Program-made: the position numbers and the translations under genes
From: Epithemia pelagica
Taxonomy: Eukaryota > Protista > Bacillariophyta
DNA: 64,000 nt
Direction: 5' to 3'
NCBI GenBank assembly: GCA_946965045.2
Contig: OX337234.1
Span: forward strand, 3,472,001-3,536,000
In this document: in pieces, positions 4,136 to 48,495 of the stretch
How positions within the stretch are numbered: position 1 is the stretch's first letter
Layout: the number at the start of each line of letters is the position of its first letter
Notes under the pieces: generated by a model
Seen by the model: the letters and a program-made list of their open reading frames with translations, nothing else
What the model was told of the DNA's origin: nothing
Databases searched by the model: none

Positions 4136-6478
4136 TTGGCTCCAGAACCTCTCACAAAGAGGACCAGAAATCAAAAGAGACACCCACATTCGGGAACCAA
4201 CGCCATCTCCACTGTAAACCAAACCAAGCCAGAACAGATCGTACGATACAGCAGCACCCAAGACAGCCAAAGTCCTTTTGCAATCATGGTGAAAGAGTCA
4301 GATTCCTTGCCACCGTTTCACGCCTCGTCTCCATCCTCTTCTTTGTACTCGAACAATCTTCCATGGATGTCATCTCTTGGTGGGAACCTGTCGCCAACCA
4401 AGGTTCCAGCTACTAGTACTGCAGCAGCAGCTGCTGCTGTTGCTGCTTCGTCACCACATGGAATTCATCGGAGCCAAATCATGGACTGGCAGATACCTCC
4501 TCGTTTCATTTCCAACCAGAATAGTAGCAGCAACGTGGTCCCTTGGTTGCCGGATGCTGCTGGACAAGCACTCCAAGAACAACGCCAGAAACAACAAGAA
4601 CTACTAGTACGCACACCAATTGCAGCCGCATCGGCCACTCATTTAAATCGCCCCGTGCAGTCGTTTCTACGTCAATCTCAAGCGAAACACAAGGTTCCAA
4701 CCAGTACTCCTACGCATCTTACTCCACAGCCAACCGCCACCCGTATGGCGCCCACCCATTTGCTCGATCAGCAGCAGCAACAACCGGCCGTTGTGGCATC
4801 CAGAACGGCAGCCGCTGTACGGCCCCCAGGAAACAACCAACAGTCTTCCTCTGACTCGTGCTGGATGGGATTGTTGGATCAGCATGCATCTAACGATGCT
4901 CCACTAGCAGCAACAAGGTATGCGTGGGCATCCCCGAGCACCACCTCGATTCCACGACATGTGTCCCATGAAATAGAAGCAACAGAAGCTGCTGCTGCAT
5001 CAGCTGCCAGAACCACAGCAGCACCCAACGAGAAAGAAGATCTTTCCGAGCTCCCCAAACTGCGCTCTCGTATGCGGGGCTACGTGCATGAGATTATTGT
5101 GCAACAACATCGCGAGGAAACAAAATCCTCGAATCGTTCGACTCCCAAGGCCGCAGCCTATTTGCAAGCCGTTGCCAAGGATTGGGAGCTGGTCCAAAAG
5201 GAAACAGATCCCTTGCAATTTGTTCGACGCTGCGATTATGATTTATGGGCTGGAGCACAACGATTGTGTTTGTATTGGACTGAACGATTAGCCTTGTTTG
5301 GACCGGAACGAGCCTTTTTGCCCATGGTCCAAACTGGTACTGGAGCCTTGACAAATCAAGACTTGTATACCCTTCAAGCGGGCTTCCCTTGTTTGTTGCC
5401 ACCTCCCATTGCACCATTGCCGTCGGAAGACGAAGAGCCAGAGGCGGGCACCAGCAAGAGCCCATCCTGTCTCTTGTTGGATCGGAGGAAATGGATTCCA
5501 TCTCAATGGTCATCGACAGAAAACAAATTGCGGTGCTTGTTTTATCTCATGCACATTTTGGCTCAAGAACAGGAAGCCCAAACCAAGGGTGTCTTGGTCT
5601 TGGCGGCTGTCATGACACCACGTTTTCCCGAGCTGAATTTGCAGTGGATGCATCGGGCAGCATACTTCGGGGCGAAAGTATTTCCTGTCAAGGCGCACTT
5701 GCATTTGCTCAACTTTGTACCTCACAGTAAGGCCACAAACCATAACAACCCGCAATCTTCGTCTTCGTCCTTGGTCGAACAAGCCATGGAATGCACCGTG
5801 AGCATCGTTCGACGGTATGCGCTTCCCAATTATCCCATTCACACTCACACACAACGTGGAGGAGGTGGTGGTGGAGGTCCATCGTCGGGTACGAGTCAAA
5901 CCAGCAAGTCATCCCTTTCTTCCAAGAACACTATTGTACAAGATCTGTTAGAACTGGGATTGAAAATGGAAGGAATCCCCATGGCCTATGGAGGCGAATG
6001 GAGGTTTGATGAATTCTTTCAATGGTGTCGTGAAAGACGAGAATGGGAGCAAGAAACCTTTCAAGATCGACTCTTGTCACCCGATGCATCATCCAACGAG
6101 AAAAGAACGGACAACGCGGAGGACAGAAGCCCATTCCACGCACTAGGAAATGGCCTTGATTTGAGTTGGTACGCAGCCGCAGGCGGTCAACACAAACGGA
6201 GAAGAGGAAACGACGGCCAACCGATCCCCGGGAGCAACTCAAAACCTAGTGCTACAAAACAAGACAAACAAGTCAAGAGTCGCATTGCCGACATGCTGCA
6301 TTCTCGAAGAAAGCGGGAACGCCGACAAAAAGAAGTACAACATCTCAAGATCGAATCGACCAAACTCACGCAGGAGCATACTGCTCTCAAGGCCCAACAA
6401 GAACGGTTGCAACAATTCCTAGAGGCAGCTCAAGCCATTGTCGAACAGCTAGAGGACGGCAAGACTGACATAGAATGA
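4136..6478 (+). CDS. Sec14/CRAL-TRIO-like + bZIP protein, paralog 1 (first ATG 4286)
   Basis: Long ORF with Q/A/S-rich N-terminus. Core ETDPLQFVRRCDYDLWAGAQRLCLYWTERLALFG...IPMAYGGEW resembles CRAL-TRIO_N + Sec14. C-terminus RIADMLHSRRKRERRQKEVQHL followed by heptad leucines. Confidence 0.8.
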   Translation: MAPEPLTKRTRNQKRHPHSGTNAISTVNQTKPEQIVRYSSTQDSQSPFAIMVKESDSLPPFHASSPSSSLYSNNLPWMSSLGGNLSPTKVPATSTAAAAAAVAASSPHGIHRSQIMDWQIPPRFISNQNSSSNVVPWLPDAAGQALQEQRQKQQELLVRTPIAAASATHLNRPVQSFLRQSQAKHKVPTSTPTHLTPQPTATRMAPTHLLDQQQQQPAVVASRTAAAVRPPGNNQQSSSDSCWMGLLDQHASNDAPLAATRYAWASPSTTSIPRHVSHEIEATEAAAASAARTTAAPNEKEDLSELPKLRSRMRGYVHEIIVQQHREETKSSNRSTPKAAAYLQAVAKDWELVQKETDPLQFVRRCDYDLWAGAQRLCLYWTERLALFGPERAFLPMVQTGTGALTNQDLYTLQAGFPCLLPPPIAPLPSEDEEPEAGTSKSPSCLLLDRRKWIPSQWSSTENKLRCLFYLMHILAQEQEAQTKGVLVLAAVMTPRFPELNLQWMHRAAYFGAKVFPVKAHLHLLNFVPHSKATNHNNPQSSSSSLVEQAMECTVSIVRRYALPNYPIHTHTQRGGGGGGGPSSGTSQTSKSSLSSKNTIVQDLLELGLKMEGIPMAYGGEWRFDEFFQWCRERREWEQETFQDRLLSPDASSNEKRTDNAEDRSPFHALGNGLDLSWYAAAGGQHKRRRGNDGQPIPGSNSKPSATKQDKQVKSRIADMLHSRRKRERRQKEVQHLKIESTKLTQEHTALKAQQERLQQFLEAAQAIVEQLEDGKTDIE

Positions 6479-7176
6479 CAATGGGACGACTACGAAAATG
6501 TAGACTTTCTACACGATCACCAGGTAGATGACGATGTTAACAAAGAATCGACGTCAAGACGTTGTCCTTTGGGACAGATTCAATCATCGTCTCCCTAATA
6601 TTGGCATTTGGTAGTCTTCGGACTTCGGAGATGGATATTCGTCAGTCCACATCCACATAGCACTATTATGTGTCGGTTGTAGGCTGTCGGCTGTCTGTTG
6701 GTCAGTTCCCCCAATCAATGTCCTACCAATGACCAATGAGGAAATAATACTCGTAGTGAGCCCTCTAGAACCGAGAACACTCGTATTGTAGCTCGTAGGA
6801 CTTATAGTCTAGCCCAGAGAAATTGCCCTTCTGCGAGCGACTGAGGGGCAATTAATTGCAGGGCATAGTAGGCCCTTCCACCGAGAACCGTACACGAATA
6901 TAAACCCAAAAAGATTATGAGATTGCTACACAGGAAAGAAGAACACTTGACTAGCCCGACACCCACAAATAATTGTCAGCTTCGTCTCTCGATCCTCACA
7001 TCATCATCAACAGCTTTTTCTGGACCGTTTCCGTGGCTTGGCCTTTCACCAACGTACCAATTCCAATAAGAGAGTTCCCATCCCCTGCCCAGTGATCGGA
7101 AGCACATGTTGTGATTTGTGATGGCCTGAAACTCATGATTTGTTTTTTCCGATTTTCTCATTGATCTGCCATCAGT

Positions 7177-7955
7177 ATGCCCGATGGACCAATCGTGTTC
7201 CATTCTCGTGCTAATGATCAAGATAAAAGTATGGAGGTAGACGGCTGCGAAACAAGAACGAACATGGTTCGTGCTGCTCCTGAAGTCTTGGGCGAAGACG
7301 ATTTGCATCATTTGCCGGAACTACGAAGTCGAATCCGAGGATATGTCGATACCATCATTCGATCCAACATGATTGCCCTGGAAGACTCCGCCGCTTATTT
7401 AGAAGCAACGACAGTGAACGCAGACGTGGTGCAAACAGAAACCGATCCCATTCAGTTTGTCCGACACTGCAACTACGATTTGTGGGCCGGTGCCAAACGA
7501 TTGTGTCTTTACTGGAAAATGCGAAAGCGACTATTCGGCAAAAGGGCTTTTCTTCCAATGGTATTGACTGGCGCGGGTGCCTTGACCGAGCAAGATTTGT
7601 ATACTCTCAAAGCTAGTTTTCCAGCATTGCTACCCGAATCTCCTACACATCCCAAAAGTCTGTTGTTGGATCGACGCCGATGCATCCCCGACCATGAATC
7701 GTCCACCGAAAACAAACTCCGTTGCTTGTTTTACCTCATGAAAGTCTTGGCCGAAGACGACCGCGCTCAAATTGATGGGGTGCTGGTTTTTGCGGTAGTC
7801 TTTACACCTCGCTTTTCTAAGCTAAACCTAGCCTGGATGCATCAAAGCATCTACTTGACGGCAAACGCCTTTCCAGTCAAAACACACCTGCATCTCCTGA
7901 ACTTCGTCCCATTGCAAAAGAAAGAATCTTTGGTCACACAAGCAGTGGACCTGGT
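7177..7955 (+). pseudogene. Sec14-like + bZIP paralog 2, 5' part (interrupted by Copia insertion)
   Basis: Same core motifs (ETDPIQFVRHCNYDLWAGAKRLCLYW...). Similarity to the paralogs stops at TSD CTGGT (7951-7955), where the LTR begins. Confidence 0.9.
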
Positions 7956-8725
7956 AGTTAAAGTACGGCTAGCTATAGACCTAGAACTACCTTTCGAAGA
8001 ACAACACCTAGACTCTATGAGAGTACACGTCTACCATGACATAGCTGTGCCATCTGTCCTGCAAGCTTTTGCGAACACGTGCGTGGACGGCTGACGAAGC
8101 TGTGCCCATGTATGTGACATGTCCGAGCCTGCGGCATAATGTTCCCTCTCTGAATAACCCTGGTGTTTTGTGATACACATTTACATATGCCCACTACTAT
8201 CTACGACAGGCAAAAGCCGGACGAGCTCCACTCGGAAGCAAAGTCCAGGCTATGTCTCACCTAAAACATACACGTCTCCAACTTACAACAAGATTCACCA
8301 AAGGATCATGGATACTTGGTTCAAGCCAATAGTTCCGCCTCTATCCCTCACAGTTTGAGTATATGGAACAGGTTCTATGCACTAAGAGAACAGGTTCCAT
8401 TAGTCCCTAAACGTAGAGCGTCTGTAGCGCCTTACCTAGAAGTCAAAGATGTTTCTTCACCGGGCCCAACGATTCGGGAAAAGTAAACTCTTTATGACCG
8501 AAAGGAAGTAATGAAAGAGCAATCATGAGAAACAAACACTTTCGATAGAATAAAGCTCACTTCTTATAAAAACCTGAAAGTTGTAAGCAACCTTTAGGAA
8601 GGAGTCAACCATACTAACCTAGTGCAAGGTGAGGGCCCCATCGTGTACCGAGTGAACTGGTTGACTACAGAAGTTCAGAGCACTAACCATCACGTCTTAC
8701 GTTAGTTTTTCTACATACATCAAGT
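7956..8725 (+). repeat. 5' LTR of Copia element 1 (770 bp, AGTT...CAAGT)
   Basis: Identical by eye to 17683-18452. Followed directly by the PBS. Confidence 0.95.
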
Positions 8726-8738
8726 GGTTATGAGCCCA
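8726..8738 (+). promoter_or_regulatory. Primer binding site GGTTATGAGCCCA (complementary to the anticodon arm of tRNA-iMet, half-tRNA priming)
   Basis: The reverse complement TGGGCTCATAACC matches the initiator tRNA-Met anticodon stem-loop. This is the same PBS type as yeast Ty5 and Drosophila copia, abutting the LTR. Confidence 0.75.
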
Positions 8739-8987
8739 AAGAGGCTGACGAACCGTACGCCTCCTCTATCGTATTGCCGACAAGACCGACGGACCGAACC
8801 AACCTCTCTTCAGTGTGAATTATTGTATTCATCAGGAAGGGAACGACAAATCTCCATTGCTACGTGGTTATCGACCCACTAGTAGCATCCAACCAAGCGC
8901 GCCGGAAGCCATCAAGGCTCCAACCAAGGTACCAACACGAGCGACGAGGACTCACCAACTTCCAGTGGTGCAGGAAGCTTCGACCTC

Positions 8988-11900
8988 GTGTCCATACCAG
9001 GTGACGAAGACACCGTATCCAGTACCGTTGATCTTCCAACACCTATAGCCAATCTGACGAACGAAGACGCCCTTGTTGACGAACAAGGACAGAGTATTGC
9101 TGCTTCGGAATCGCAGATTGTTGAGTCTCCACCAGGTCCATCTAACAACGACACCCAACATCAGGGTTTGATTGTTGCATCTCAACGACAAAGAAGGAAG
9201 ACCACCATGAGTGACGAGACTCCTACTCCTCCACCCGGTATCGATTACCGCCCCGACCCGCCGAAGATTGGCGGACTGGTCCGAAGCAAGAAGGACGAAT
9301 GGGTGGCCTGGACTGGAGGAAAACCCACGTACAAGTGGGATGGGTTAGAGGTAAAGGCGACAGAACCACTGCGAACGATGCAGATACGTACCCTGACAGA
9401 TAAGAAATACTACGATCGTATCTCCGGGCCTGACGAAAAGTACAGCAAGAAGACCGGTGATTCTAGCCGTCTCCAGGATGAAATCAAGCAGCACTTGATT
9501 AAACACGGCATGGATTCGATCGCATACCTCCCCAATCCTCATGATCCCAAAGACATGTTGTTCATTGTAATCGAGCACCCAAAATATACGATGAGCAAGG
9601 TGAAGGAATTGATGAAGACGCAGATTGTGAGTTATGACAAGTACGACAGAAACAACGACGTCAGTGCCCAGGACTACTTACTGGACTGTTTGGAAAAGTC
9701 CTTTAGGCACGAAGTTGAGGACCAGAGTCGGGAAGTGACGTGCTTCCCCGAGCTCTTCATGGTCCTTGTCACCATCGTGACACATGATTCCCCGCAGCAC
9801 TGGGAACAAGTGAAGCACGAGATGCGAGCTCTTGTGCCTCACAAGTACCCTGGCCACGATATTATGGCGTTGACTAAAGATTTTTTGGAAAAAGCGCGAC
9901 CGTTGATCGCAGCTGGACAGTACGACCACACTCTGACTGGGAACCTCCTAGCTAACATCCTCAAGACTGAATGGCCTGACACGCCTAAGTTCGACCTACT
10001 TACTCTGAACAAGCGTGTCAATGACGGTATTATCCATATTCGGTTTCTAGATCGCTCTATCGGAGACAGTCATATGAAGAAAGAGCGTCTTTTGTACACA
10101 GATGTTATCGAAGAGGCGAACAAGAAGTACCTAATCTGTGTCAAGGAAGGTGAATGGTCACCTAAACGAAGTTCTCCTGATTCTAAATCCGTCCCCTCGT
10201 CGTTCACCGCTAACAAGGCTACCGTTTCGAAGACTAAGAAGAAACGGCATTCTATTATGACTCAAGCTAGTCTTAATGCACTCATTCAGACACTTCGAAA
10301 CCCGCCGGGTTCCAATCCGACTCCAAGCAATGGACCAAACACCCAGCCTGGCTCCAATCACCGCGACAGGAAGGGAAAGCCGATTCACAAGCGTAACAAC
10401 ACTCGCGTTGATCGATCGCAGGCTCACCCTTGGAAGAAGATCCCTCCTGCTCCTGGTGCACCTGAGCAGCAGACGATCCAGGGTCAGCGGTGGTTCTGGT
10501 GTGGTGTTTGTACCCGTTGGAACACCTCTCACACCACGGCAAACCATATTGTTGGGTATAAAAAGTCTCCTGGCGACAAGGACAAAGCAAAACCTCGGAA
10601 TGCCACCCATGCGAAGAAACTTGAACTCGAAGTATCCGCTTGGCAGACCGAATTCGATCTCGACCAACTTGATCCTCCTGCCTTGCCCGTCGCTGCTTTA
10701 CCCGACTGTATGTCCCTTGCCTCTGTGGATTGTTGCGAAGCTCTGATGAATGATGATGATGATTGTTGCGATTCGGTTGATTGTTGCAAGGACACCGTCG
10801 ACCACTACGTCTTCTTCACCATTTGGGACATGTCACCATCCGATGACAGCTCGTCCATGGACTGCAGTTCCACCAACTCTGGAAACGACGATGATGACAC
10901 TGACCGGACACCGCCTATTCCGTTTGACGAATTGCGCCGCATCCTGTCACCCAACAACAATGAACCAACCGCCACCAATCACAACGATAGCGACCACAAG
11001 GATGATGACAATGAACCATGCACTTGCAACACAGAAACAAAAGAAAAGAAAACAAGCACAAATAATGAAACAGTCTCGATCTGTCGACCTCACAAGGACG
11101 ATGACAGCTCCACTGAAAGTGAAGACAACGAAGATGAGTATGCTGATATGCCACCACTTGTGGCACAAAAACTCACACCAGTTGTGGCAAACAAAGACTT
11201 ACCGAGTTCGGCAAGTAACAAGGAAGAAGAACAAGAAAAGAAAAAGGGAAAGTTGAGTGGATCGCATGCCAAGACACTGTACTTCGACAGGTGGGACGAC
11301 ATCGATATGTGGTACGGCAGTGACCACAGTCCCACAGACCAACGTACCTTCTCTAGCGTTGAAGCCAACGCAGCTGTGCACGACAAAAGCTTCGACAGCA
11401 CCAAGATCAAGCAGGAGGACGAACAGGATAGTGATGAGAATGCTGGTGGTTTGGACACAACCATGGATACACAAGAAGGATCGCTTATCAGCCATGACAA
11501 CAGCAGCGACCTTACCCACCTCAAGAACCTGCAAGAAGGACTCCTGGACGACTCGAAGCCGCCAGCTCTTCGGCGACCCGAGATCTCACCGGTGACGAAC
11601 CCGACGCCATTGCGCCATGACCAATTCCCGACTCCTGCCACTGAAGCTCTCGAGCAGTGGACTCGAGGTTTTGTACCTCGGCCACGTCCACGTGATCCAC
11701 GCATCTCCATCGAGCAAGAAGCCAACACAGCAAAAAGAGACGGAATGAGGTACGAAAGGGCGCAGTACACGGTGTACGCTCTTCGACATCAAGAACCAGA
11801 ACTTACCGTGGCTGTCGCCTACCAGCGAGTCAAGGACGAAGAATGGTTCGTGGGATGGTTCATTGATGGAACCAGAATCCCGAACCATCCGAATCCAGCT

Positions 11901-14900
11901 CCCGTCTGGCCCGAGATGAGTGTGCACTCAACTCCTCTTCCTTGCCTTCTTCGCTCTCGAATCATGGAGCACCGACCCATTGACCAGAAATATGATCAAT
12001 TTGTCTCGTTCTTGAATCAGAGTAACGCCACGCCTTCTCCCGTGAATATTTCCGATCCACCGCCCGTCGATCTACATTCAAGAAGCACAGCGTGTGAGAC
12101 CTTGGAGAACATGGCTGATGAATCTGTCTCATCCACCTCTTTCGTCGACAACAGTCAACTTGGTGCACTGTACGTACCAACAGATACCAGCGAAACCGAC
12201 GACGACTCTAGGACCAAAAAGCGCAGCGAAAATCCATTTGCAAAATACTATGCCTGTGCTGCCATGGTGGATCTCGACGACACCACAAACTTGCAAGGAG
12301 ACGATGCTGCAGAAAATGAAGCCGAACTGGCTCGCCATCCTGACACCATGGATGAACTGATCACAAGTGCGGCCGACCACTTATGGTTTTTGTATGCTGA
12401 GTATTCCCATGCAGCTGACCCGGGACTCAAAGATCTTTTGACTCTTCGGATTCAAAATACCCGTCGCATGATTCGCGACATGTGGTATTTTATTCTTGAG
12501 TGCGAACAAACACCAGGATCGCCCTACGAACATGCGGGATTGAGTCTCGTACATGATGTAGCCTATGAACTGACGAAATGTGGACCAATTTCACCACCGA
12601 GGTACAACTTGGATCGCCCCTGTCTTACGGTCACTCCCGATCGAGTCTCTTCTAATGACTCCATCTCTACTGTGACTGTTGACCAAGACAGGTCCTATCC
12701 TACAGATGACCACGCAAAGGTTTACATGGCTGCCTTTGACATGTCATACACCGAGTCAACCCGCCGTGATCGCCCTTACGTGACTCCGCCACGCGCTCCC
12801 GCGCCTGTCGACACTACTGTTGACTCAAGATCCCTGCGCCGTCACATGTTACGTGCTAGCTTCATCACGTTGGTTGTGGTGGTACCCAGTGTCCTCTATC
12901 TTCTGCCATCACCCCAACCCTCCACCTATGCAACTACAGTCTTCACAGACGGAATGGCCTCTCTCATGTCTAGCTTTGGCTACTACTGGATGGGAACCAA
13001 GACTTTATTTTATGGACTATGGGCTTTGCTCTGGAGCGTTTTGGCCCATCCATCATGCCAACCTGCCTTCCTTTCTTGGCTTTCCTGCTGGATTGTTGTT
13101 TTGATCTTGCTTCCCAAGACCATTTCACCCGTGACAGGCCATCCTTCTCCTTTGTTCAACTCCACATCGACACCTTCCATCCATCATTTCCGTGCCACTC
13201 TCCATCCGGTACCTCCGCCCTCTTCTACCTTATCATCTGGTGGATTGTGGAGTGTGGTGAGCAATGGACTGGCCTATGCAATGAGCCGCCGTTTCCCGCT
13301 CATTTACATCCGTTTGATTGTTGGGTCGTTTTGTAAGTTGTTGCATCTGGACTCTTTTGGGTCCACTCACGCTGCTCCTCCGTGTGCACCAGTCAGTACC
13401 CGTCCGAAAAGAGGGAAGAACACTGCATTCCCTTTGAATCACCCTCGTGTCAAGCGAAAGCCGTCGTTTCGATCCGTGACTTCTTCACCGGCACACAAAC
13501 GAGCACGTATGCGACAACGGATGCCGCGACCAATCCCTCTCCGTCGTCGCGCAACTCCGTACAACAACAACAACAACTCAGCACGTACCAGGTTTAATCC
13601 ACCCATGGGAACCCGCAGCTCTGTGATTCCCACGAATAGCTACCAACGCTTCCATTACAACAACCGAACCTCGTTCACGACGCCCAATCGTCGTAACAGA
13701 AACACCGATAACCACTCACCCACTCGAAGTGAAGCCTTGAGGAGCAACCGACAGTCATCAACCCCAAGACAAGTCTTTGGTTTGACTGCATACCTTGAGG
13801 AACTCCGCTCCCTCAACGCCTTTCAAGTCTTGGGGAACACACGCAACTACGACTCATGGAGGTACATCACTCCTGCTGGCTTGGAAGCGTGCCTTCAGGA
13901 TCCAATGGCCTTGAGGAGCGCAATGCCGAATGACGCGTCTTATCCCATCATCTGGGATAGTGGCGCCAGCATCTCCATCACCAACAACGAAAAAGACTTC
14001 GTGGGCAAGATCGAACCACTACCAAACTTCAAGGTGAAAGGCATCGCCAATCGCATGAAAGCGATTGGCCGCGGAGAGGTCTTGTGGAGCATCCTTGATT
14101 CTTCTGGAAACATCCGACAACTTCGAATTCCTGCTTTCCTGGTACCCAAGACAAGTGTCAGACTGTTATCGACACAGAGTTTGCTTCAGACGTATGACGG
14201 AGAAAAGATTGTGCAAGACGGTAAAACATTGGTACTCACCGGTTTACCTGAAGACACAACACGAACACAAGTCACTGTCGTTGTGAATCCGCAAAACAAT
14301 CTCCCAATGTCGTACGGTTACAACCATGAGGAAGTAACCAAGAGTTCGCATGCTCTCAACACAATCGTCAACGAAACATCAGAACAAAACAAGAATCTTA
14401 GTGAGACACAGAAGGAACTGGTACGTTGGCATCTTCGCCTTGGGCACCTATCGTTTCGTCGAATCCAGTTCATTATGAGAACTGGAATTCTCGCAAAAAC
14501 TGAGCAACAGCGTCGTTTGCACACAAAAGCAGCATCACTCACCGACTTACCTCTTTGTGCAGCGTGTCAATATGGAAAACAAAAGAGACGTCCATCACCT
14601 GGAACCTTGAGTTCCATTGTAAAAGACAGACGGGGAATAACAAAAGCCGGAAATCTTTACCCTGGTCAGTGTGTAAGCGTAGATCACTTTGTATGCTCCA
14701 CTAAAGGACGCTTATTTACATCCCGAGACAAGTCAAAATCTTCCGACCTGTACATGGGCGGCGCAATCTTTGTAGACCACGCTTCGGGGTACACCTGGAT
14801 TGGGTTCCAGAGTCATCTAAACACCCATGAGACCCTACGAGTAAAAGACTCATTCGAACTTTTCTGTAGAGATGTGGGAGTTGTGCCCCTACAGTACCTA

Positions 14901-17633: not shown

Positions 17634-17673
17634 ACTGAGTCTACGGCATGTCGTAATTCCCCAATCACTCCAT

Positions 17674-17682
17674 GAGAGGGAG
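17674..17682 (+). promoter_or_regulatory. Polypurine tract GAGAGGGAG of Copia element 1
   Basis: Purine run immediately 5' of the 3' LTR. Confidence 0.85.
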
Positions 17683-18452
17683 AGTTAAAGTACGGCTAGC
17701 TATAGACCTAGAACTACCTTTCGAAGAACAACACCTAGACTCTATGAGAGTACACGTCTACCATGACATAGCTGTGCCATCTGTCCTGCAAGCTTTTGCG
17801 AACACGTGCGTGGACGGCTGACGAAGCTGTGCCCATGTATGTGACATGTCCGAGCCTGCGGCATAATGTTCCCTCTCTGAATAACCCTGGTGTTTTGTGA
17901 TACACATTTACATATGCCCACTACTATCTACGACAGGCAAAAGCCGGACGAGCTCCACTCGGAAGCAAAGTCCAGGCTATGTCTCACCTAAAACATACAC
18001 GTCTCCAACTTACAACAAGATTCACCAAAGGATCATGGATACTTGGTTCAAGCCAATAGTTCCGCCTCTATCCCTCACAGTTTGAGTATATGGAACAGGT
18101 TCTATGCACTAAGAGAACAGGTTCCATTAGTCCCTAAACGTAGAGCGTCTGTAGCGCCTTACCTAGAAGTCAAAGATGTTTCTTCACCGGGCCCAACGAT
18201 TCGGGAAAAGTAAACTCTTTATGACCGAAAGGAAGTAATGAAAGAGCAATCATGAGAAACAAACACTTTCGATAGAATAAAGCTCACTTCTTATAAAAAC
18301 CTGAAAGTTGTAAGCAACCTTTAGGAAGGAGTCAACCATACTAACCTAGTGCAAGGTGAGGGCCCCATCGTGTACCGAGTGAACTGGTTGACTACAGAAG
18401 TTCAGAGCACTAACCATCACGTCTTACGTTAGTTTTTCTACATACATCAAGT
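17683..18452 (+). repeat. 3' LTR of Copia element 1 (770 bp)
   Basis: Offset 9727 from the 5' LTR. The duplicated small ORFs 8170-8358 and 17897-18085 have identical translations. Confidence 0.95.
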
Positions 18453-18457
18453 CTGGT

Positions 18458-19001
18458 CACCAACATTGTTCGATTGTACGCCAAGCCTGACTATGCTGTT
18501 CAAGTTCATTCACATCGCGGAGATAATCATAGTATGGCACAAGAATTGATGGCGTTAGGTTTGTCCAAGAAACAGATACCCTTCGGCTATGGAGGAGAAT
18601 GGAAGTTTGATGACTTTGTCAAGTGGTGTCGACAACGCAAGTCCTGGGAGCAAACTATGTACAGGGATCAGCTCCTACTTCAGTTGAGGAGTCGACTTGT
18701 AACCCAAGAAACTGAGAATCTTTCCACCACGCAAAGCTTCGTCCATGGACACGACAGTGGAGAAGGAGAAGAAGAAAAAGTGAGGGAGGAGGAGCGAAAA
18801 AAGAATCGACGTCTGGCTGACATGGTTCACTCGCGACAGAAACGTGAACGCAAACAAAAAGAGTTTAAATGGCTTCAAGGGGAATCGCTGAAGTTACACG
18901 AGGAACACGATGCCTTGAACCGGGAACAAATGCGTTTGGAACAGTTGCTGAGGGAGGCCCAGGAAATCGAAGCATCCATGTCCCATCCTCGCCAGAAGTG
19001 A
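18458..19001 (+). pseudogene. Sec14-like + bZIP paralog 2, 3' part
   Basis: Removing the element plus one TSD gives the in-frame junction ...AVDLV-TNIVRLYAKPDY...IPFGYGGEWKF...RRLADMVHSRQKRERKQKEF, a 440-aa protein colinear with the paralogs. Confidence 0.9.
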
Positions 19002-19232
19002 AGGCCCGACAGCTGACTGAAGAGAACAGCTTCTTATTTTGGTTTGTATTTTGTGACATTCGATACTCATTTTCTGCCTAAAATTTGTCTATTAGTACTG
19101 CCCTATTTTTCGTCGCTTTTATTCGACTGGTCTCTGATCTTGCTATGATACCGTCTTCTCGGCAGCATCTTGTTGTATTTTGCTTCATCGTAAAACTAGC
19201 AAGTTCCATGTCCCAACTTGTTACATCATCAT

Positions 19233-19260
19233 GATGGATGATGGATGATGGATGATGGAT
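19233..19260 (+). repeat. (GATGGAT)4 microsatellite
   Basis: Seen directly. Confidence 0.8.
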
Positions 19261-28742: not shown

Positions 28743-29269
28743 ATGTTTCCCTTTCATCATCACCATTATTCGGCCGCTTCTACTTCTCCACGGTCTTCCG
28801 TAACAAGAACACCCACAAGGTTCCACTCTTCTCCTTCTTCTCGAAGTGAGGAGGCACAACAAGTGGTTGCTGCTGCTGCAACAGCATCGTCTTCAGCGAT
28901 TGCTCGAGCACTCTGCCGGCAACCACAACAGCAACCATCCAATGTTCATCCAATAGTTCTCTCGTCACCGTCGTCATGGTTGCATCGACATCAACTTCTC
29001 CCCCCGGCAGTCGCCGACTCGACCCTCAAGCAACAGCAACAACAGCAGGTGCCTCGTGGTTCTCTGCCCCCTCCTCATTCTTCCTCCACGGAGCAGCAAG
29101 ACCTGTGGTTGGTTTGGAAGCAGCAACAGCAGTACCAGCACCAAGAGAGTCGGATTAACCTCGAGTCCTATCACAAGCGCTATTGTACAGCCATTGGCCT
29201 CGACTTGTTGTGGCCGGCCCCGAACACTGCTGCTCCTTTTTCCCCACCAGGGAATCGTCCAGCAGCAGC

Positions 29270-29301
<32 letters not shown>

Positions 29302-36044: not shown

Positions 36045-36401
36045 GAAGGAGTGGGTGCGTACTTCAACAATACGTATACGGCGTCCGGCGTGTCCAAGGA
36101 CGATCCTGGCCAACCAAAGTTACTAAAGACATTCACCGGACAGAATGATGGCTTGGCAAGTGTGACCACGAACATCCGAGAACCGGTTGAAGGGAGGAGG
36201 AACTGCAACTGCAACAACTACGTAAATAATGGAAGAGTCATCTAAAAAGTTTAAAACAGATCGTCAACGGGCAACTATTATTTTGTGATTAGACGACGAC
36301 GACAGGAGACAGGAGCGCCCTATCATGCATGGTTCATTCCGAAGACGACATCGTTCACCATTTTCCGTTGATTTAAAGGCATTCCCATTCTCATCGTCAT
36401 C

Positions 36402-37952
36402 ATGAAGCGAGCTGATCTTTCGAACTTCCTGCTGGACCACCTTGTGGACCAGAATCATCATCAGAATCATAGCAATCATCATCGTCAGAATCACCATCAT
36501 CTGCAACCGATTCAGCAAGTCTCAATATCAGCACCGATGATTTCGGATCCACACCATACTTTATTACGTCGACAATATGGAGCACAGTCTGCCGAGTCGC
36601 TACCACCTCGGCTGCCAGCGACTGTAGCCGCCACAGCAGCAACGGCAACAGCGGTGCATCGGGAGGATCTTTCTCAGTTGCCCTCCCTACGAGCTCGAGT
36701 TCGAGTCCATGTTCACGGTGTCATTCTATGTCTTCCTTCTAGTCAAGATTCGCAAGCATATATGGAGGCAATGCAGAAATGTCCCGATCTTGTAGAAACC
36801 GAGACGGATCCAATCCAGTTTGTTCGATGTTGCGATTACGATATCCTCAATGCTGCCAAACGCCTATGTATGTATTGGACTGAACGTGTCAAACTGTTTG
36901 GTTCTCAACGAGCCTTTTTGCCTCTGGTTTTGACTGGAACTGGCGCTCTTACACCCGAAGACGTCCATACCATTCATGCTGGCTACCCTGCCATACTCCC
37001 CGATACAACTACGGGTCGCAAAGTTATTCTAGAGGATCGGAGTAATTGGACTCGCACGGCTAGTATGGAAAATAAGCTCCGTGCGTGGTTTTATTGCATG
37101 TGTATTTTGAGCAAAGACATTATGTCCCAAACGGAAGGCTATGTGACTGGATTGATTGTGCTGGTTACGCCTCGAGATCGTGACATGGATTGGAACTTAG
37201 TCCATCGTCTAGCGCATTTGGGATCTCAAGTCTTTCCTATAAAACCGTCTGGTCACTTTATCAGCATTCCCAATCGTCGAAAACGCAATCTCATCACCGC
37301 ATTTTCTCAAACAGTCATGGACATTTGTCGACACTGGTACGACAATCCTCAGATGCAATTTCATGTGGAATCCGAACCCAATCAAGTATTGAGAGAATTG
37401 ATGGGAGTGGGTTTTACCAAAAAGGGTGTTCCGCTATCCTTTGGTGGTGAGTGGAAGAATGAAGACTGGTACAATTGGTGCCAAGAACGCAAAGAATGGG
37501 AGCAAGAGTTGTACAGGGATCGATTGCTCAAGAAAGCTCCCAGTTCATCCAGTAGCGGGGATCATAGTGGATCTCGGTACGTTATGGGTGATCAAGTTTC
37601 AGAATTGGTTGGTGCGACGGCCTCATCAGACAGTTGTCAAGTTGATAGCGGCAACCGCCGTCATCCTGATCATCATCGTCACTCGGCTGCTGCACAACCA
37701 CAAGGAGGACTTGGTGGTGGTGATGACGATCCCATGGACGAGGAACAGGCACAAGCTCGGCGCGAAAGTGTACTGCGTTCCCGACGACATCGTGAACGGC
37801 GAAAAGAACATGTGAAATCCCTCAAGGAGGACCATGCCAAACTCTCCTTTCAAAATTCTCAATTACGCGCCGAACAAGAACGACTCGTGCGCTTGGTGGA
37901 GGAAGCCCAAAACGTGGTTTCCTTGATCTCTCGACAAGATGCCATTCTGTGA
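36402..37952 (+). CDS. Sec14/CRAL-TRIO-like + bZIP protein, paralog 4 (516 aa, more divergent)
   Basis: ETDPIQFVRCCDYDILNAAKRLCMYWTERVKLFG...VPLSFGGEWK. C-terminus RRESVLRSRRHRERRKEHVKSL followed by heptad leucines. Confidence 0.85.
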   Translation: MKRADLSNFLLDHLVDQNHHQNHSNHHRQNHHHLQPIQQVSISAPMISDPHHTLLRRQYGAQSAESLPPRLPATVAATAATATAVHREDLSQLPSLRARVRVHVHGVILCLPSSQDSQAYMEAMQKCPDLVETETDPIQFVRCCDYDILNAAKRLCMYWTERVKLFGSQRAFLPLVLTGTGALTPEDVHTIHAGYPAILPDTTTGRKVILEDRSNWTRTASMENKLRAWFYCMCILSKDIMSQTEGYVTGLIVLVTPRDRDMDWNLVHRLAHLGSQVFPIKPSGHFISIPNRRKRNLITAFSQTVMDICRHWYDNPQMQFHVESEPNQVLRELMGVGFTKKGVPLSFGGEWKNEDWYNWCQERKEWEQELYRDRLLKKAPSSSSSGDHSGSRYVMGDQVSELVGATASSDSCQVDSGNRRHPDHHRHSAAAQPQGGLGGGDDDPMDEEQAQARRESVLRSRRHRERRKEHVKSLKEDHAKLSFQNSQLRAEQERLVRLVEEAQNVVSLISRQDAIL

Positions 37953-42141: not shown

Positions 42142-43545
42142 TCATCCTCCTCCTCCTCGCCACCCTTTTCCTCCTCCCAGAAATCCCCGACGGGGTGTTG
42201 GTGAGGCTGACTGCGACGACTTGGGTGCTGTATTTGTGGAGGACGGTCGCATCCAGGATCGTCCTCCTTTGTGGTGTTTTGGTTTGTATTTTTGTGTCAA
42301 CACCTTGATATGAATCCAAGGCGCCATGCTCTTTTTGCGCGAATCCCAATGACACAAGGCCCTTCCTGGATTCTTGGTTTGGTCATTCATCTGTCGTTGC
42401 AAGCAGTCGACGAATTCCGTCCATTGCGTGGAAGGATCGGGCCAGTCCGTGTCGCACGAGTCAGTATCCTCAGTGTACTGGTGGTTGGTACCAAACAAGA
42501 CACGGCAGACTTGAACGACTTCATCGACCGTCAAGGGTCGTTCATCGAGCAAATCCAAGACACGGGCATGATCCTGTGCCATGCCCAATTCGCGACACCG
42601 ATGCAAGGGCGTGGCATAGTTCAGCCAGGGATTGTACTGTCCGACTTCCTTGGCTTCCTGGACGGCATCGTCCAGGACTTCGAGGGGCAATTCCAGTTGT
42701 GCATCCAAGGCATTGTAAAACTCTGTCACACTTGGTTCGTTGGTACACAGACGAATGACGAGCCAAATGGGCAATTCTTGCAACTGTTTCAAGGCATGCA
42801 CAAAGGCCATTTGAATATCGGAACCTTCGTGGCCCTGTTCATCAGTAGGCAAGCCATCGGTACAAAGAATGACGGCGATTTGTTGCCCCGTGTCTTGCAA
42901 TTGTGGTTGGAACTTGGTCACGGTTTCATAGATCCACTGAATGTGATGTGTCAAGGGTGTCACACCTTGTGGTTTTGTTCGTTGCAGAATACTCCGTGCG
43001 ATGCGCAATTCTTCGACTGATGTCGCATTCATTCCCATGGAGGACATCGTAGGGATGGTTCCATTCGTCGTTTGCGTCGGCGAACTCATGGGCTGTCTGC
43101 TGTTGATAGGGGAAGTACTTCCAACGGAAAATTCCGAAGCACAGTCCTTGTGCGAGGACGGATTCAACAATCGAAAATGCGTGGGCAACTGGAGGGCGGC
43201 AGCCAATTCGGCCTGTTGCAAGGCGGTATGTTGCAATTCGTCCCACCGTGTGACGGCCTGACCATGCCAAGTACCATTGCAGGTTTCCACGACACGATAT
43301 CCATCGCCAATGGCCATGCTTCCCGAATTGTCCAGAATCCAAATGCGTTGACAAAACACTTGCGACGACTCGACAATGGCGTCCAGCAAACCCTGGGTAA
43401 ATCCTTGAGAATGTTGCAGCGAATGGATAAATGGATTGTTGTTGTGGTTTCTCGTGGAATGTTGTTGTTGTGGACGAGTTGTTGTTGTTGTTGCGGGTGA
43501 CATGGCAAGAGGTGTTGTTGTTGTTGTTGTCGGTATTCCTGACAT
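42142..43545 (-). CDS. von Willebrand factor A (vWA) domain protein (467 aa)
   Basis: MIDAS-like WILDNSGSM...TPLT...ILCTDGLP, with low-complexity termini. Confidence 0.8.
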   Translation of the reverse strand: MSGIPTTTTTTPLAMSPATTTTTRPQQQHSTRNHNNNPFIHSLQHSQGFTQGLLDAIVESSQVFCQRIWILDNSGSMAIGDGYRVVETCNGTWHGQAVTRWDELQHTALQQAELAAALQLPTHFRLLNPSSHKDCASEFSVGSTSPINSRQPMSSPTQTTNGTIPTMSSMGMNATSVEELRIARSILQRTKPQGVTPLTHHIQWIYETVTKFQPQLQDTGQQIAVILCTDGLPTDEQGHEGSDIQMAFVHALKQLQELPIWLVIRLCTNEPSVTEFYNALDAQLELPLEVLDDAVQEAKEVGQYNPWLNYATPLHRCRELGMAQDHARVLDLLDERPLTVDEVVQVCRVLFGTNHQYTEDTDSCDTDWPDPSTQWTEFVDCLQRQMNDQTKNPGRALCHWDSRKKSMAPWIHIKVLTQKYKPKHHKGGRSWMRPSSTNTAPKSSQSASPTPRRGFLGGGKGWRGGGG

Positions 43546-44554
43546 TCTGTGGTTGTGTAGTCTTTCACTGGATACAAATCAAGAAAAGCAAAACCATGTC
43601 AGAATCTGAACGTAACTATGCGGTAACAACGGCCCCACGAGTGTGTTAAAATGGATGGGCTCGTAGCTGTGGCACGTTGAGAGAACAATGGAACCGAGAG
43701 AGCTAACACGTGTCTTACTCGCATCTTCGATCGTCTTTCAATTTGCGGATTCTCAAGCTTACCTCATACTCGTTCCACAACTGCACTGAACCGAATGAGG
43801 CAGCTACTATAGTTTCCAGAGGACAGTCCAATAGCAATATCTATATAGCAAACGAAAGTCGGTTGCATCCACAAAGAAACTTTAGTTGCGGCCTTGTCTC
43901 TCTTGTTGTGTTGTTGTTGCCAAATTTTGTAAGACGGTGGAAGCGATCGCCCATCTCCCCCCGCTCTCAAACACATGGAGTCGAAATGTCACAGTACATC
44001 AAAGAGTACGCTTATTTGCAGTTGAAAGCGCATGCCTTGTACTGTCTGGGGGGGATCCGACGATAAGACCGGCGAGCCTGCCATCACTGGAACGACCGGC
44101 GCGCACTACCTATCACATGAGTGTGGAAAAGGTAGGTCCTGAACCATTACAATAAGGAAAGCAACCATCACCACAACAACGTCTAGGCACAACTAGATGG
44201 TAGAGAGCAATGCAAACAGATGGAGTGTGATCAGAGGGGCAAGGTCGCACCGATTTCATTCTGCTATTGGATCCAGTAGAACGATGCACTCTCCTACTCC
44301 TGCCTCAAGACCCCAACACGGATATGGCTAGGAGGATTGAACTAGGTCGATTCCAAGAGAAGCATCCATCTTGTTTGGGCTTTAGAGGCGTAACAGGGGA
44401 TTCGCGCTTGGTTTTGCCCGCTCACGGATACAGCACCAGTTCAATCCAAGGAACTCCAATGCCCGCGGTACAGAGACAGCGAGAAGGAAACCATGGTCTT
44501 TTCATTGTCAGTTCATTTTCTTTGTGTCATTGGTACTGCTGCTGTTGGGAATGA

Positions 44555-46276
44555 CTAATTTTGTCCATTCCCATCGTTCTCGTGACCAGCTAGAGTCCTT
44601 ACAATTTCGTGTGCCTGGGCTAGAAACTGTTCCAAACGAGCCTTTTTGGCCTTTAACTGTTGATTCTCCTGAACCAAGGATTCCGATTCTTGCTGTAATA
44701 GTGCCATTTCTTGTCGCCGACGTTCTCGTTTCCTTCGTGAATGCAACAAGTCCGCCATGCGTCGTTTCGCCAACCGTTCGTCGACTTGCTGCTGATGTCC
44801 GGATGGCGTTGGTGCTGTGCTGGACGATGGATTGCCTCGTTTCCGATAGTTTGGAGCGTCGCCCGAGTTGGTCATGGTAGCCGACACAGCCCTACCGCTG
44901 ATGGTCTGTTCGAGATTGTCTGTCGCCGTCAGTATCTCTCGTCCAGAAAGGTGCGACAAGGTCGATCCATACTTTTCCAAGTGCTCGTCTTTTCGTTTTT
45001 GACACCAGGCATACCAATCGTCAATTTTCCATTCACCTCCAAAGCTCAGAGGAATTTCTCTCTTGTGAAGTCCCAGCTCCAATAAGTCTTGTAGGATTTG
45101 TCCCGGTTGCGTTTGAATATGTGTCTGAACATGAGGCAAGGAAATAAATCGACCAAACACTTGGACAGCTACATTGACCACATCCACGGGTCGAAAGGGA
45201 CGCTTGTGATTGGGTATGCTCAAGAAATGAATCGCGCGCATTCGGACTGGGAAGACACTGCATATACAATAGACTGCTCGTTGAACAAAGGTCCAATCCA
45301 AACTCTCATGGCGGGGTGCTACCGCCAAAATAAAGGTCCGAATACCTTCTGCTTGGGCTTGATCGTCTTGTGCCAAGACACTGTACACGTAGAAAAAGGC
45401 TCGCAATTTGTTTTCCCGCGTTGCTCCCGGAATCCAATTGCGTCGATCTACCAAAACAAATTGCAGTTTTTCTCCAGTTGTAGTAGTTATGTTGTCCTTC
45501 TTGTCGGAGGAGAACTGCAAAATGGCAGGAAATCCAGCCTGAATGGTGGATATATCCTCCTTGGTCAAGGCGCCTTGACCAGTCAGGGTCATGGGCAAAA
45601 AGGCTCGTTGTGGTCCAAACAGGGCCAACCGTTCCGTCCAATACAAGCACAAACGTTGTGCCCCAGCCCACAAATCATAGTTGCAATATCGGACAAATTG
45701 CAACGGATCCGTTTCCGTTTGAACCAAGTCTGCATTGCATTGCATGGCTTGCAAATAGGCAGCCGCAGAGGTTTCGTGATTGAACGTCTGACGAATCACA
45801 CTATCCACTTGGCGACGAATGCGTTGACGCAGTTCAGGCAGTTGAGACAAGTTCATGCCGTTCGCATTCCCATGATCTACGCGAGTTTTGTTGTTGTTTA
45901 TTGTTTGAAAGGGAGATTGCTGTTGTGGTTGTTGTTGTTGTGAGGAGTTGGACGACGATGGAAACAGATTCGATATATTCGGAATGGTAACTTGACTTGC
46001 AGCACTCATGACTGTTCCAGGAGCTTTCATTTGGTCTATCATGCTGTTTCTCGTTGCTTGACTTGTACCATATCCGGTCGAATGTATCCAACTCCCAGTA
46101 GCACTTGCTACAGTTTGAGAAGCAGACGAAGGACCCTGCGGATAATGGGGCCATTGATGATGTTCAGAAGATGACTGTGATTGCGGATGCCCATGAGAAG
46201 GAGACGGAAAGAGACTCATGTCCATCAAGCTCGTTTTGTACGTTGAATCGAGACGAGGAGGGACTGTATGGTTCAA
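44555..46276 (-). CDS. Sec14/CRAL-TRIO-like + bZIP protein, paralog 5
   Basis: ETDPLQFVRYCNYDLWAGAQRLCLYWTERLALFG...IPLSFGGEWK...KRRMADLLHSRRKRERRRQEMALL. Confidence 0.85.
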   Translation of the reverse strand: MNHTVPPRLDSTYKTSLMDMSLFPSPSHGHPQSQSSSEHHQWPHYPQGPSSASQTVASATGSWIHSTGYGTSQATRNSMIDQMKAPGTVMSAASQVTIPNISNLFPSSSNSSQQQQPQQQSPFQTINNNKTRVDHGNANGMNLSQLPELRQRIRRQVDSVIRQTFNHETSAAAYLQAMQCNADLVQTETDPLQFVRYCNYDLWAGAQRLCLYWTERLALFGPQRAFLPMTLTGQGALTKEDISTIQAGFPAILQFSSDKKDNITTTTGEKLQFVLVDRRNWIPGATRENKLRAFFYVYSVLAQDDQAQAEGIRTFILAVAPRHESLDWTFVQRAVYCICSVFPVRMRAIHFLSIPNHKRPFRPVDVVNVAVQVFGRFISLPHVQTHIQTQPGQILQDLLELGLHKREIPLSFGGEWKIDDWYAWCQKRKDEHLEKYGSTLSHLSGREILTATDNLEQTISGRAVSATMTNSGDAPNYRKRGNPSSSTAPTPSGHQQQVDERLAKRRMADLLHSRRKRERRRQEMALLQQESESLVQENQQLKAKKARLEQFLAQAHEIVRTLAGHENDGNGQN

Positions 46277-46923
46277 TTTCTTTTTGTTTGAAACAAGTCA
46301 GATACACGGACTTTTATTGTTCGTTGTTCGCCTTTGTTTTCGTCATAGGTTACGAGATAGCGCTGTTCATGACATGCGACATTTGCAGTGTCTACGGCAG
46401 AATCTTCACTATGACAGAACCAGGGGGCAACGTCAAACGTCATAGACACAAACAAAAAAATAATAGATTATTTATCCCCCCGAGCGGGGTGAGTCCAGGA
46501 CTTTAGTGATTGAATGCACGATGTGCATTCTCTTACTCATTCCACTATGACTCTCTAGCATCCTAAAAAAACAAATCTTCTGGGGAGTAAAAAACGAGTG
46601 GAGTAATTATTACTCCACCCTGATGATCGCGACGGCTGGTTGCTAACAGATCATGTATCAGTCGCTCGCACATAATGGGGCGCGGGACCACAATTTTGTT
46701 ATTGAAGCAGATTCTCTTAGACATAATATACTGCTACTCACAAAGGCTTGAACTATCGATAGACAAACAATGTGTGCCCAATATGGCTCGACAGAGGAGA
46801 TAAAATCGGGAACTAGTTTTGCTGATGCAAAACGAAACAGCGGAGTATTTGCTTGTATTGTATAACTCCTTTTCTGTCATTCTTGACAAGGTTACTGTAG
46901 AGCTCGAATGCCTTGGTGCATTC

Positions 46924-48495
46924 TTATCCATCATTATCGCCACCTACACGACTCCTTACAATCTCTTGTGCCTGGATCAGGCAGTGTTCTAAACGAGCTT
47001 GATGGCTCTTTAGTTGTTGATTTTCCTTCATCAAGGATTCTGATGATTGTCGCAGTGACGTAACTTCTTGTCTTTGACGTTCTCGCTTCCTTTTTGAGTG
47101 CAACAGGTCCGCCATGCGTCGTTTGGCAACTCGTTCATCGACTTCTTGCTGTTGTCGAGAAGCTGGTGATGAAGATTCTTGTGAAGAAGCGTGGAGGTTC
47201 GTCGCACTTCTCGCCACCGACACCCCTGCTTCTCGCTCATGAACAGAGTGATTCAACTGGAAGGATGAAACATACTTTTCCAAGTGTTCTTCTTTTTGAC
47301 TTCGACACCAGGCATACCACTCGTCGATTTTCCATTCGCCTCCATAGCTGAGAGGAATTTCTTTCTTGTGCAGTCCAAGATCCAATAAGTCTTGTAGAAT
47401 CTGTCCAGGCTTCGTTTGGATATGCGTTTGAACGTGCGGCAAGAAAATAAAACGGCCAAACACCTGGACGACCATGTTGACGACATCGAGCGGCAGAAAG
47501 GGACGCTTGTGGTTCGGAATGCTCAAGAAGTGTAGGGCCTTGATCCGAACCGGGAAGACTCGTGTTAAGAAATACACAATTTTGTGTACAAGGGTCCAGT
47601 CAACTCGTTCATGACGAGGAGCTACTGCCATGATGAATGTTCGAACCCCGTCCAATTGAGCTTGGCTATCTTGCGTCAAAACACTGTACACATAGAAAAA
47701 GGCTCGCAATTTGTTTTCCCGCGATGCTCCCGGAATCCAATTCCGACGGTCTATCAAGACCGACTTTGGGTTTTCTCCATCACTCATACTGAGGTTTGTA
47801 TCCTTCGAGGAAGACTGCAAAATTGCAGGGAATCCTGCGTGAATCGTGCTTATGTCATCCTTCATCAAGGCTCCTTGGCCAGTCAGGGTCATGGGCAAAA
47901 AGGCTCGGTCTGGTCCAAACAAGGCCAACCGTTCCGTCCAATACAAACACAAACGTTTTGCTCCAGCCCACAAGTCGTAGTCACTGTACCGGACAAACTG
48001 CAAAGGATCTGTTTCGGTTCGAACCAGCTCTGGAATGCGTTGCATGGCTTGTAAATAGGAGGACGCACATGTTTCGTGATTGAAACTCTGGCGAATGACT
48101 CTGTCCACTTGACAGCGAATGCGATGACGCAACTCTGGTAGCTGAGACAAGTCCATTGTTGTCAAATCAACTTCGTCGAAGATACGGTCATTCTTGGTTG
48201 TTGCCAACGCTCGTTGTTCAAAAGAAGCCAAAGTTGTTGAAGCAGCAGACGCAGGAGGAGTGGTGTTTACAGATGACAATGTGAAGGTGGCTCCTCTCCC
48301 TGAAGGAACCGCAATCAGAGTGCTTGCTCTAGACGAATTCGTTCCAGCTACAGTATAGGCTCCATTCAAAATGTTGGTTGGATCAGCCTCGGCTTCTGTC
48401 CTAGAGGACATCCAAATCCCTCTTTTTGTGGAACAAGACATCCCTTGGGGCCACTGTAGTCGCGAGCCATGAGCAGAAGGATAAAAGAGACTCAT
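46924..48495 (-). CDS. Sec14/CRAL-TRIO-like + bZIP protein, paralog 6 (tandem sister of paralog 5)
   Basis: 523-aa ORF whose core and bZIP (KRRMADLLHSKRKRERQRQEVTSL) are very similar to paralog 5. Confidence 0.85.
   Translation of the reverse strand: MSLFYPSAHGSRLQWPQGMSCSTKRGIWMSSRTEAEADPTNILNGAYTVAGTNSSRASTLIAVPSGRGATFTLSSVNTTPPASAASTTLASFEQRALATTKNDRIFDEVDLTTMDLSQLPELRHRIRCQVDRVIRQSFNHETCASSYLQAMQRIPELVRTETDPLQFVRYSDYDLWAGAKRLCLYWTERLALFGPDRAFLPMTLTGQGALMKDDISTIHAGFPAILQSSSKDTNLSMSDGENPKSVLIDRRNWIPGASRENKLRAFFYVYSVLTQDSQAQLDGVRTFIMAVAPRHERVDWTLVHKIVYFLTRVFPVRIKALHFLSIPNHKRPFLPLDVVNMVVQVFGRFIFLPHVQTHIQTKPGQILQDLLDLGLHKKEIPLSYGGEWKIDEWYAWCRSQKEEHLEKYVSSFQLNHSVHEREAGVSVARSATNLHASSQESSSPASRQQQEVDERVAKRRMADLLHSKRKRERQRQEVTSLRQSSESLMKENQQLKSHQARLEHCLIQAQEIVRSRVGGDNDG

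Follow-up and report, generated by a model that had tools for sequence, protein, structure and literature searches.

Which proteins are encoded by six related genes that join a Sec14-like core to a terminal leucine zipper, and could such proteins couple a lipid signal to transcription? This question is raised by a stretch of the genome of the diatom Epithemia pelagica (assembly GCA_946965045.2, contig OX337234.1, positions 3,472,001 to 3,536,000 of the forward strand), and the whole 64,000 nucleotides are referred to here as the window. A preliminary description had placed six paralogs in it and had proposed that they form an expanded family of lipid-sensing transcription factors. We find that the proteins consist of a disordered Q/S-rich N-terminus, a CRAL-TRIO/Sec14 fold, a disordered linker, and a basic region followed by a four-heptad zipper. 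The six copies, named g1 to g6 here, are host genes of this raphid pennate diatom. On balance, and with some reserve, we lean towards lipid-gated one-component transcription factors in which the Sec14 pocket would control the C-terminal basic leucine zipper (bZIP).

The Sec14-like core and the C-terminal helix

The window was searched with the list of open reading frames (ORFs) and with a six-frame scan using hidden Markov models (HMMs) of the family. Exactly six copies of the core with a basic/zipper module were found, at the positions given in the preliminary description, and none elsewhere. Their E-values range from 1e-18 to 1e-132 for the core HMM and from 3e-19 to 1e-24 for the zipper HMM. 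The N-termini of all six are long, variable, and rich in Gln, Ser, Thr, and Pro, so the variable Q/S-rich N-terminus described earlier is also seen in the ORF translations. The conserved core is longer than the approximately 260 amino acids (aa) first estimated and measures about 290–300 aa (~295).

The preliminary description had recognized the core as CRAL-TRIO/Sec14 by short motifs. Compared with the PDB, a core profile built from 47 sequences (A3) matched solely CRAL-TRIO proteins, among them CRALBP (8.3e-8) and alpha-TTP (0.0035). AlphaFold2, given the family alignment, modeled the g6 core with a predicted local distance difference test (pLDDT) score of 86.9 and a predicted template modeling (pTM) score of 0.86, and the top 50 Foldseek matches of this model in the PDB are all Sec14/CRAL-TRIO proteins. 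With VIA-align, the model superposes on CRALBP with a Z score of 18.3 over 246 residues (root-mean-square deviation 3.3) and on alpha-TTP with a Z score of 17.8; yeast Sec14/Sfh proteins give Z scores of 11–14, and unrelated folds stay below 5. The Sec14 modules of neurofibromin and Kalirin are also among the VIA matches. The CRALBP alignment covers model residues 9–292 and thus includes the CRAL_TRIO_N helices. In the ESM Atlas, the closest cluster is a diatom CRAL_TRIO cluster (TM 0.72). As single sequences, g4–g6 reach 13.5–17.3 bits against Pfam CRAL_TRIO_2 (E 0.006–0.09; cut-off 23), and g1–g3 have no match to this model. These sub-threshold scores are a sensitivity limit of single sequences, and the assignment to the CRAL-TRIO/Sec14 superfamily rests on profile and predicted fold. 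As modeled, the core is a complete fold of the CRALBP/alpha-TTP type that keeps the gate helix. Conservation along the core is uneven. The CRAL_TRIO_N-like helices and the linker motif that follows them carry 3.0–3.6 bits per column, and the least conserved part is the gate helix with the helix preceding it (core residues 191–204; 1.5–1.8 bits per column).

The C-terminal module was compared with the PDB through a profile of 34 C-termini (A4), for which the residue numbering of g5 is used. The best match is GCN4, with an E-value of 0.002 and an ungapped alignment; the weaker matches are mostly bZIP proteins (C/EBP-beta, Fos/FosB, NFIL3, Jun), and two unrelated coiled-coil chains also appear among them. 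The invariant arginines of the family, R514, R517, and R519, correspond to R240, R243, and R245 of GCN4, which contact DNA. Four Leu residues occupy d positions in the GCN4 register, and the basic region lies at precisely the canonical distance from the zipper (R-x9-L-x6-L...). As in GCN4, the a position of heptad three carries Asn, which is more frequent there than any other residue (49 of 98 distinct zippers); within the window this Asn is found in g4–g6 only, and g1–g3 have His. For g5, AlphaFold2 modeled the region from core to C-terminus as a Sec14 domain, a disordered linker (pLDDT <50), and an unbroken 73-residue helix (pLDDT 89–98). The Pfam models bZIP_1 and bZIP_2 give the window copies 11.7–15.2 bits, with cut-offs of 22–28. 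Of 34 relatives, six pass the threshold of bZIP_1 and five that of bZIP_2 (best E 5.9e-8), and P0025 carries PF07716 in its precomputed annotation. The C-terminal bZIP of the preliminary description therefore stands in its GCN4-register homology, leucine heptads, and modeled helix, and does not stand in one respect, since the canonical Asn of the basic region (N235 of GCN4) is absent from all six copies.

Across the family, the residue at this site is divided. Among the 98 distinct zippers, collected with a pattern that fixed the Arg so that the other positions alone are informative, Asn occurs in 46, Asp in 41, and other residues in 11, including His, Gly, and Ser in three each. Because Asn is the consensus of a more diverse alignment (A5) and prevails in the clade that branches first in the midpoint-rooted tree, it is probably the ancestral residue. 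Judged from these sequences, the change between Asn and Asp, which takes one transition, has recurred. The family thus appears bZIP-derived, with the window copies representing a non-canonical class.

The family beyond the window and selection on its members

The core profile retrieved 3157 cluster representatives with E <1e-3, of which 583 fall below 1e-30. Both modules are present in 148 of the 170 relatives that were fetched, and the order is always one or more cores followed by a single terminal zipper. The family is therefore expanded, as the preliminary description had it. Many relatives (among P0049–P0070) combine two to six tandem cores with one terminal zipper; P0049 from Amphora, with 1941 aa, has six to seven core stretches. 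Tandem genes merged in annotation were considered as the source of such proteins and rejected: there is one terminal zipper and no alternation of core and zipper, and one three-core relative is a single ORF of 2940 nt.

Labeled members come from Epithemia clementina (dozens, many of them on one 3.1-Mb contig), Amphora coffeaeformis, Entomoneis sp., and MMETSP transcriptomes. In Phaeodactylum tricornutum, XP_002178350 (B7FUN4) has three cores and a zipper in which Gly occupies the Asn site. It matches Pfam CRAL_TRIO_2 (PF13716) with 196 bits (3.9e-58) and has no bZIP match in Pfam, and it is annotated merely as a "CRAL-TRIO domain-containing protein". Most family members have no Pfam match of any kind. 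The occurrence of the fusion in other diatoms, which the preliminary description had proposed to survey, is thus seen in at least four named genera. The named taxa are all raphid pennates in a sample of 30 clusters, which is not a census. Word-index homologue searches, for which a family alignment and the P. tricornutum protein served as queries, yielded almost no further named relatives, and an Atlas feature search with a score of 0.76 provides a lead only.

In the maximum-likelihood tree, the window copies fall into three well-supported clades, all sitting among Epithemia genes. One clade contains g1, g2, and g3 with two Epithemia genes. Another contains g4 and a paralog from the same contig, together with Epithemia P0008; its other members keep Asn. 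The third is composed of g5, g6, and P0001, a near-identical copy of g5, with no Epithemia gene within it. Since the copies are spread over three such clades, the cluster joins old, retained lineages and does not result from a recent burst. P0001 itself lies on a second contig of 1.7 Mb (L001; ERZ21939226 ctg1356l, 1394170–1415657), and its core is 98% identical to that of g5. Its flanks hold a family-sized ORF and an HMG-box gene, mirroring 44.5–50.6 kb of the window, and this copy probably represents the second haplotype, or else a segmental duplication.

The youngest pair, g5 and g6, is 71% identical over shared columns. With a nonsynonymous rate (dN) of 0.18 and a synonymous rate (dS) of 1.08, its dN/dS of 0.17 indicates purifying selection; dS is saturated for every other pair, which makes their ratios unusable.

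No account of a Sec14/CRAL-TRIO-bZIP protein turned up in literature searches, for which the P. tricornutum accessions were also used, in line with the statement of the preliminary description that none was known to have been characterized. New here are the Sec14-bZIP architecture, the great size of the family, and its presence in a tractable model organism. Censuses of transcription factors based on domains would miss this family. In the genome of Seminavis robusta, 40 CRAL-TRIO superfamily genes with a pennate signature have been linked to phospholipid metabolism, and that genome paper draws no connection to transcription factors for them (PMC7335047). These 40 genes may be members of the same family.

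Features of the locus

The positions of the six copies and of the elements around them are given in Table 1. Four copies are intact, namely g1, g4, g5, and g6, and two are disrupted, g2 by a copia element and g3 in its frame. The TTG starts at 4136 (g1) and of the g5 ORF are artefacts of a bacterial ORF caller, and the true ATG lies further in; for g1, the first ATG is at ~4289.

Table 1. Family copies, retroelements, and the adjoining HMG-box gene in the window
Feature	Position	Strand	Description
g1	4136-6478	+	Intact; ORF called from TTG; core 5027-6073; basic/zipper 6248-6448; long Q/S/T-rich N-terminus
g2, 5' part	7177-7955	+	N-terminus and core as far as the copia insertion site
Copia-type retrotransposon inside g2	7956-18457	+	~10.5 kb; uninterrupted 2881-aa polyprotein ORF 8988-17633
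g2, 3' part	18458-19001	+	End of core (to 18674), linker, basic/zipper 18777-18971
Second retroelement candidate	21625-27330		ORFs of 582, 966, and 343 aa in series, with stops between the parts
g3	28743-30935	+	Core 29613-30545 intact; zipper out of frame
g4	36402-37952	+	Intact; core 36657-37526; basic/zipper 37728-37922; Ser at bZIP Asn site
g5	44555-46276	-	Intact; core 44963-45859; basic/zipper 44597-44797
g6	46924-48495	-	Intact; core 47269-48159; basic/zipper 46954-47154; in tandem with g5
HMG-box gene	49136-50569	-	477-aa ORF; HMG-box match 2.7e-6; adjoins g6

The copia element in g2 is flanked by a perfect 5-bp target duplication, CTGGT, at 7951–7955 and 18453–18457. When the element is removed, the joined halves give an open frame of 440 aa with core and zipper, which bears out the earlier treatment of the two parts as one paralog. 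Because the host ORF is intact in this way, the insertion must be very recent. The termini of the element read AG...GT and not TG...CA.

In g3, the basic/zipper module (30667–30840, stop codon 30877–30879) sits in the +1 frame relative to the core. An intron that would restore the frame was sought and rejected, as all GT..AG intervals in 30559–30660 are in the wrong phase or only 14–48 nt long. The displaced module still scores 65.6 bits with the HMM, like the intact ones, and the change is for this reason either recent or an assembly error. The linker (30559–30665) could accordingly hold a recent frameshift that leaves a Sec14-only protein, or an error of assembly.

Within the second retroelement candidate, the first ORF has a Gly/Arg-rich region and the second matches RVT_2 (4.9e-9), so that it looks like another copia-like element. 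An origin of the Sec14-bZIP family as transposon-borne or selfish genes is unsupported; the copia elements are insertions into or beside the genes and not their carriers. Further genes, including several unannotated ORFs, lie between the paralogs. The HMG-box ORF places another gene for a DNA-binding protein beside the cluster. A 467-aa ORF at 42142–43545 (minus strand) has no Pfam match and carries a D-x-S-x-S motif (..LDNSGSM..) that resembles a vWA MIDAS site, and a 250-aa ORF at 2219–2971 (plus strand) has a SKICH-domain match (8.6e-6) just over the Pfam cut-off.

For expression, assembled contigs of three runs from one study were compared over 44000–49000. Two runs, with 120 and 197 Mb of contigs, span all of this interval. 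The third, X4, with 39 Mb of contigs, covers 44222–46457 alone, that is, g5 from end to end with its flanks and without joints, and at g6 has a single 151-nt piece of depth 2. By this pattern of coverage, X4 looks like a transcriptome, although the kind of run is not on record. An unspliced mRNA thus seems to be made from g5, and g6, if X4 is RNA, seems weakly expressed or silent in that sample. A contig of run X1 (depth 134) misses one base at 47777, in the core of g6, and X3 keeps this base; the missing base may reflect an allelic frameshift or an error in the contig. Over 44.9–48.6 kb, single-base differences between the two DNA runs are numerous, and the sample therefore looks heterozygous.

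Proposed lipid-gated factors, alternative explanations, and known systems

Dimerization, DNA contact, and control by a ligand are steps that we infer, as follows. The zipper would form parallel dimers, and the dimerized zipper would set the conserved arginine-rich basic helix on DNA. A small hydrophobic ligand would load the Sec14 pocket, with the gate helix open or closed, and this loading may alter membrane association, nuclear entry, dimerization, or transcriptional potency. The outcome would be that a lipid or isoprenoid signal is coupled straight to transcription, as by the START domain of plant HD-ZIP III/IV factors. A variable pocket and gate helix on a conserved scaffold would fit paralogs with differing ligands. 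Where Asp, Ser, or Gly stands at the Asn site, the protein would probably have an altered DNA specificity or serve as a heterodimer partner.

Several observations weigh against such lipid-gated factors. The window copies score below the Pfam thresholds for both the CRAL-TRIO and the bZIP domains. The bZIP Asn is replaced in all six, by Asp in g1, g2, g3, g5, and g6 and by Ser in g4, and Asp in five copies would place an acidic side chain at the DNA interface. Tandem arrays of two to six cores fit poorly with a simple one-ligand switch. Because the CRALBP residues that flank the retinal aldehyde align with hydrophobic residues in the core, the identity of a ligand could not be read off from this alignment. 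The evidence for expression of g5 is indirect, given the unrecorded kind of run X4.

These points bear differently on the three alternatives that we weighed. The proteins could be transcription factors whose Sec14-like domain acts independently of ligand, as a module for contact, assembly, or stability with the pocket unused or filled by a structural lipid. This would agree with the conservation profile, where conservation in the core peaks at the N-terminal helices and the linker motif and not at the pocket, with the scaffold-like appearance of the tandem arrays, and with the structural matches to neurofibromin and Kalirin, in which Sec14 modules are part of large signaling proteins. However, the complete fold, gate helix included, is retained at high model confidence, and a variable pocket on a conserved scaffold is equally expected if the ligands have diversified; we therefore regard a ligand-independent domain as unlikely. 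It is similarly improbable, in our estimate, that the proteins do not bind DNA at all and are dimeric lipid-transfer or membrane-contact proteins whose helix serves as a coiled-coil dimerizer, a patch for nuclear or membrane targeting, or a decoy that titrates other bZIP proteins. The loss of the Asn from six of six window copies and from about half of the family, the Gly of the P. tricornutum protein, and the failure of the Pfam bZIP models to detect most members would all be explained in this way, whereas the invariant arginines at the positions of the DNA-contacting GCN4 residues, together with the canonical spacing from basic region to zipper, and the retention of Asn in the other half of the family would not. 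Moreover, oomycete bZIP proteins with a substituted Asn are expressed, and one of them, Pibzp1, which has Cys at the site, is reported to be functionally required (PMC4046829).

A lineage-specific expansion that transposons have eroded, leaving a decaying remnant with no current function, appears very improbable. Two of six copies are disrupted, by the copia element in g2 and the frameshift in g3, two elements of apparent copia type lie in the region, and the probable RNA run has hardly any coverage of g6. Against this, four copies keep long open frames, and the dN/dS of g5 and g6 is low. The damage in g2 and g3 is recent, because both still score like intact copies. The three clades, two of them with Epithemia genes, point to lineages that are old and retained; the family is also retained across Epithemia, Amphora, Entomoneis, and Phaeodactylum, and g5 is apparently expressed.

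Lipid-gated transcription factors thus remain the reading towards which we lean. A wider claim, which we put forward tentatively and consider rather doubtful, is that raphid pennates, and possibly diatoms at large, possess a large class of receptor-like factors of their own, with one to six Sec14 pockets that sense lipophilic metabolites and directly drive a bZIP. Candidate ligands for such receptors would be carotenoid or apocarotenoid derivatives, tocopherols or quinones, sterols, oxylipins, and phosphoinositides. If this were true, diatoms would have arrived independently at the principle that underlies the nuclear receptors of animals and the START-HD-ZIP factors of plants, and changes between Asn and Asp in the basic region would give rise to classes with distinct DNA specificity or a decoy function. 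Diatoms account for a large share of marine primary production, and few of their pathways from signal to gene are known. Ligand gating would imply hundreds of direct switches from metabolite to transcription in diatoms, a third independent case in which a lipid pocket is fused to a DNA-binding domain, and, for synthetic biology in algae, a new ligand-switchable module. The member XP_002178350 opens the idea to direct testing, since P. tricornutum is genetically tractable.

The fusion of a lipid pocket with a DNA-binding domain is a known principle, as in nuclear receptors and START-HD-ZIP factors. For the core, the nearest known proteins are CRALBP and alpha-TTP, to which it has profile-level homology at an identity of ~20%. 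The common fold extends over ~240 residues (Z 17–18), from the helical domain at the N-terminus through the alpha/beta pocket and the gate helix to the ..P..(Y/F)GG.. motif at the C-terminus. CRALBP and alpha-TTP are stand-alone soluble carriers, whereas the diatom proteins add a Q/S-rich N-terminus, a bZIP, and up to six tandem cores, and the polar residues near the retinal aldehyde of CRALBP are not kept in them. Human SEC14L2, or tocopherol-associated protein, was reportedly described as a ligand-dependent transcriptional activator (Yamauchi 2001). It shares the Sec14 fold but lacks a DNA-binding domain of its own, with a GOLD domain in place of the bZIP.

For the C-terminus, a parallel is found in the non-canonical bZIP proteins of oomycetes (C-R, R-R, and V-R classes; Pibzp1), in which the Asn is likewise replaced, the conserved Arg and the zipper are kept, and the group is expanded and expressed (PMC4046829). 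These proteins have Cys, Arg, or Val at the site, whereas the diatom family has Asp, Ser, Gly, or His, and no Sec14 domain is reported for them. Aureochromes are stramenopile fusions of bZIP and LOV sensor (PMC4937327). They occur in the same algal group and also join a bZIP to a small-molecule sensor domain. In aureochromes, however, the LOV domain is C-terminal to the bZIP, while in the diatom proteins the Sec14 fold, the putative sensor, is N-terminal and the bZIP comes last; no PAS/LOV match was found in the window copies with Pfam, and no link to flavin or light is implied.

In plant HD-ZIP III/IV factors, the START domain binds phospholipids and promotes dimerization and transcriptional potency (PMC10226595; 10.1101/2021.10.20.465175). 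The logic is the same, with a lipid-transfer-type pocket, a DNA-binding module, and a leucine zipper in one polypeptide. The folds are unrelated, with a START helix-grip instead of Sec14 and a homeodomain instead of the bZIP basic helix, the order is reversed, and the lineage is another; neither homeodomain nor START was found in the window copies with Pfam. The resemblance is thus an analogy and not a membership, and by this analogy the HD-ZIP START factors are the best functional analogue of the Sec14-bZIP proteins.

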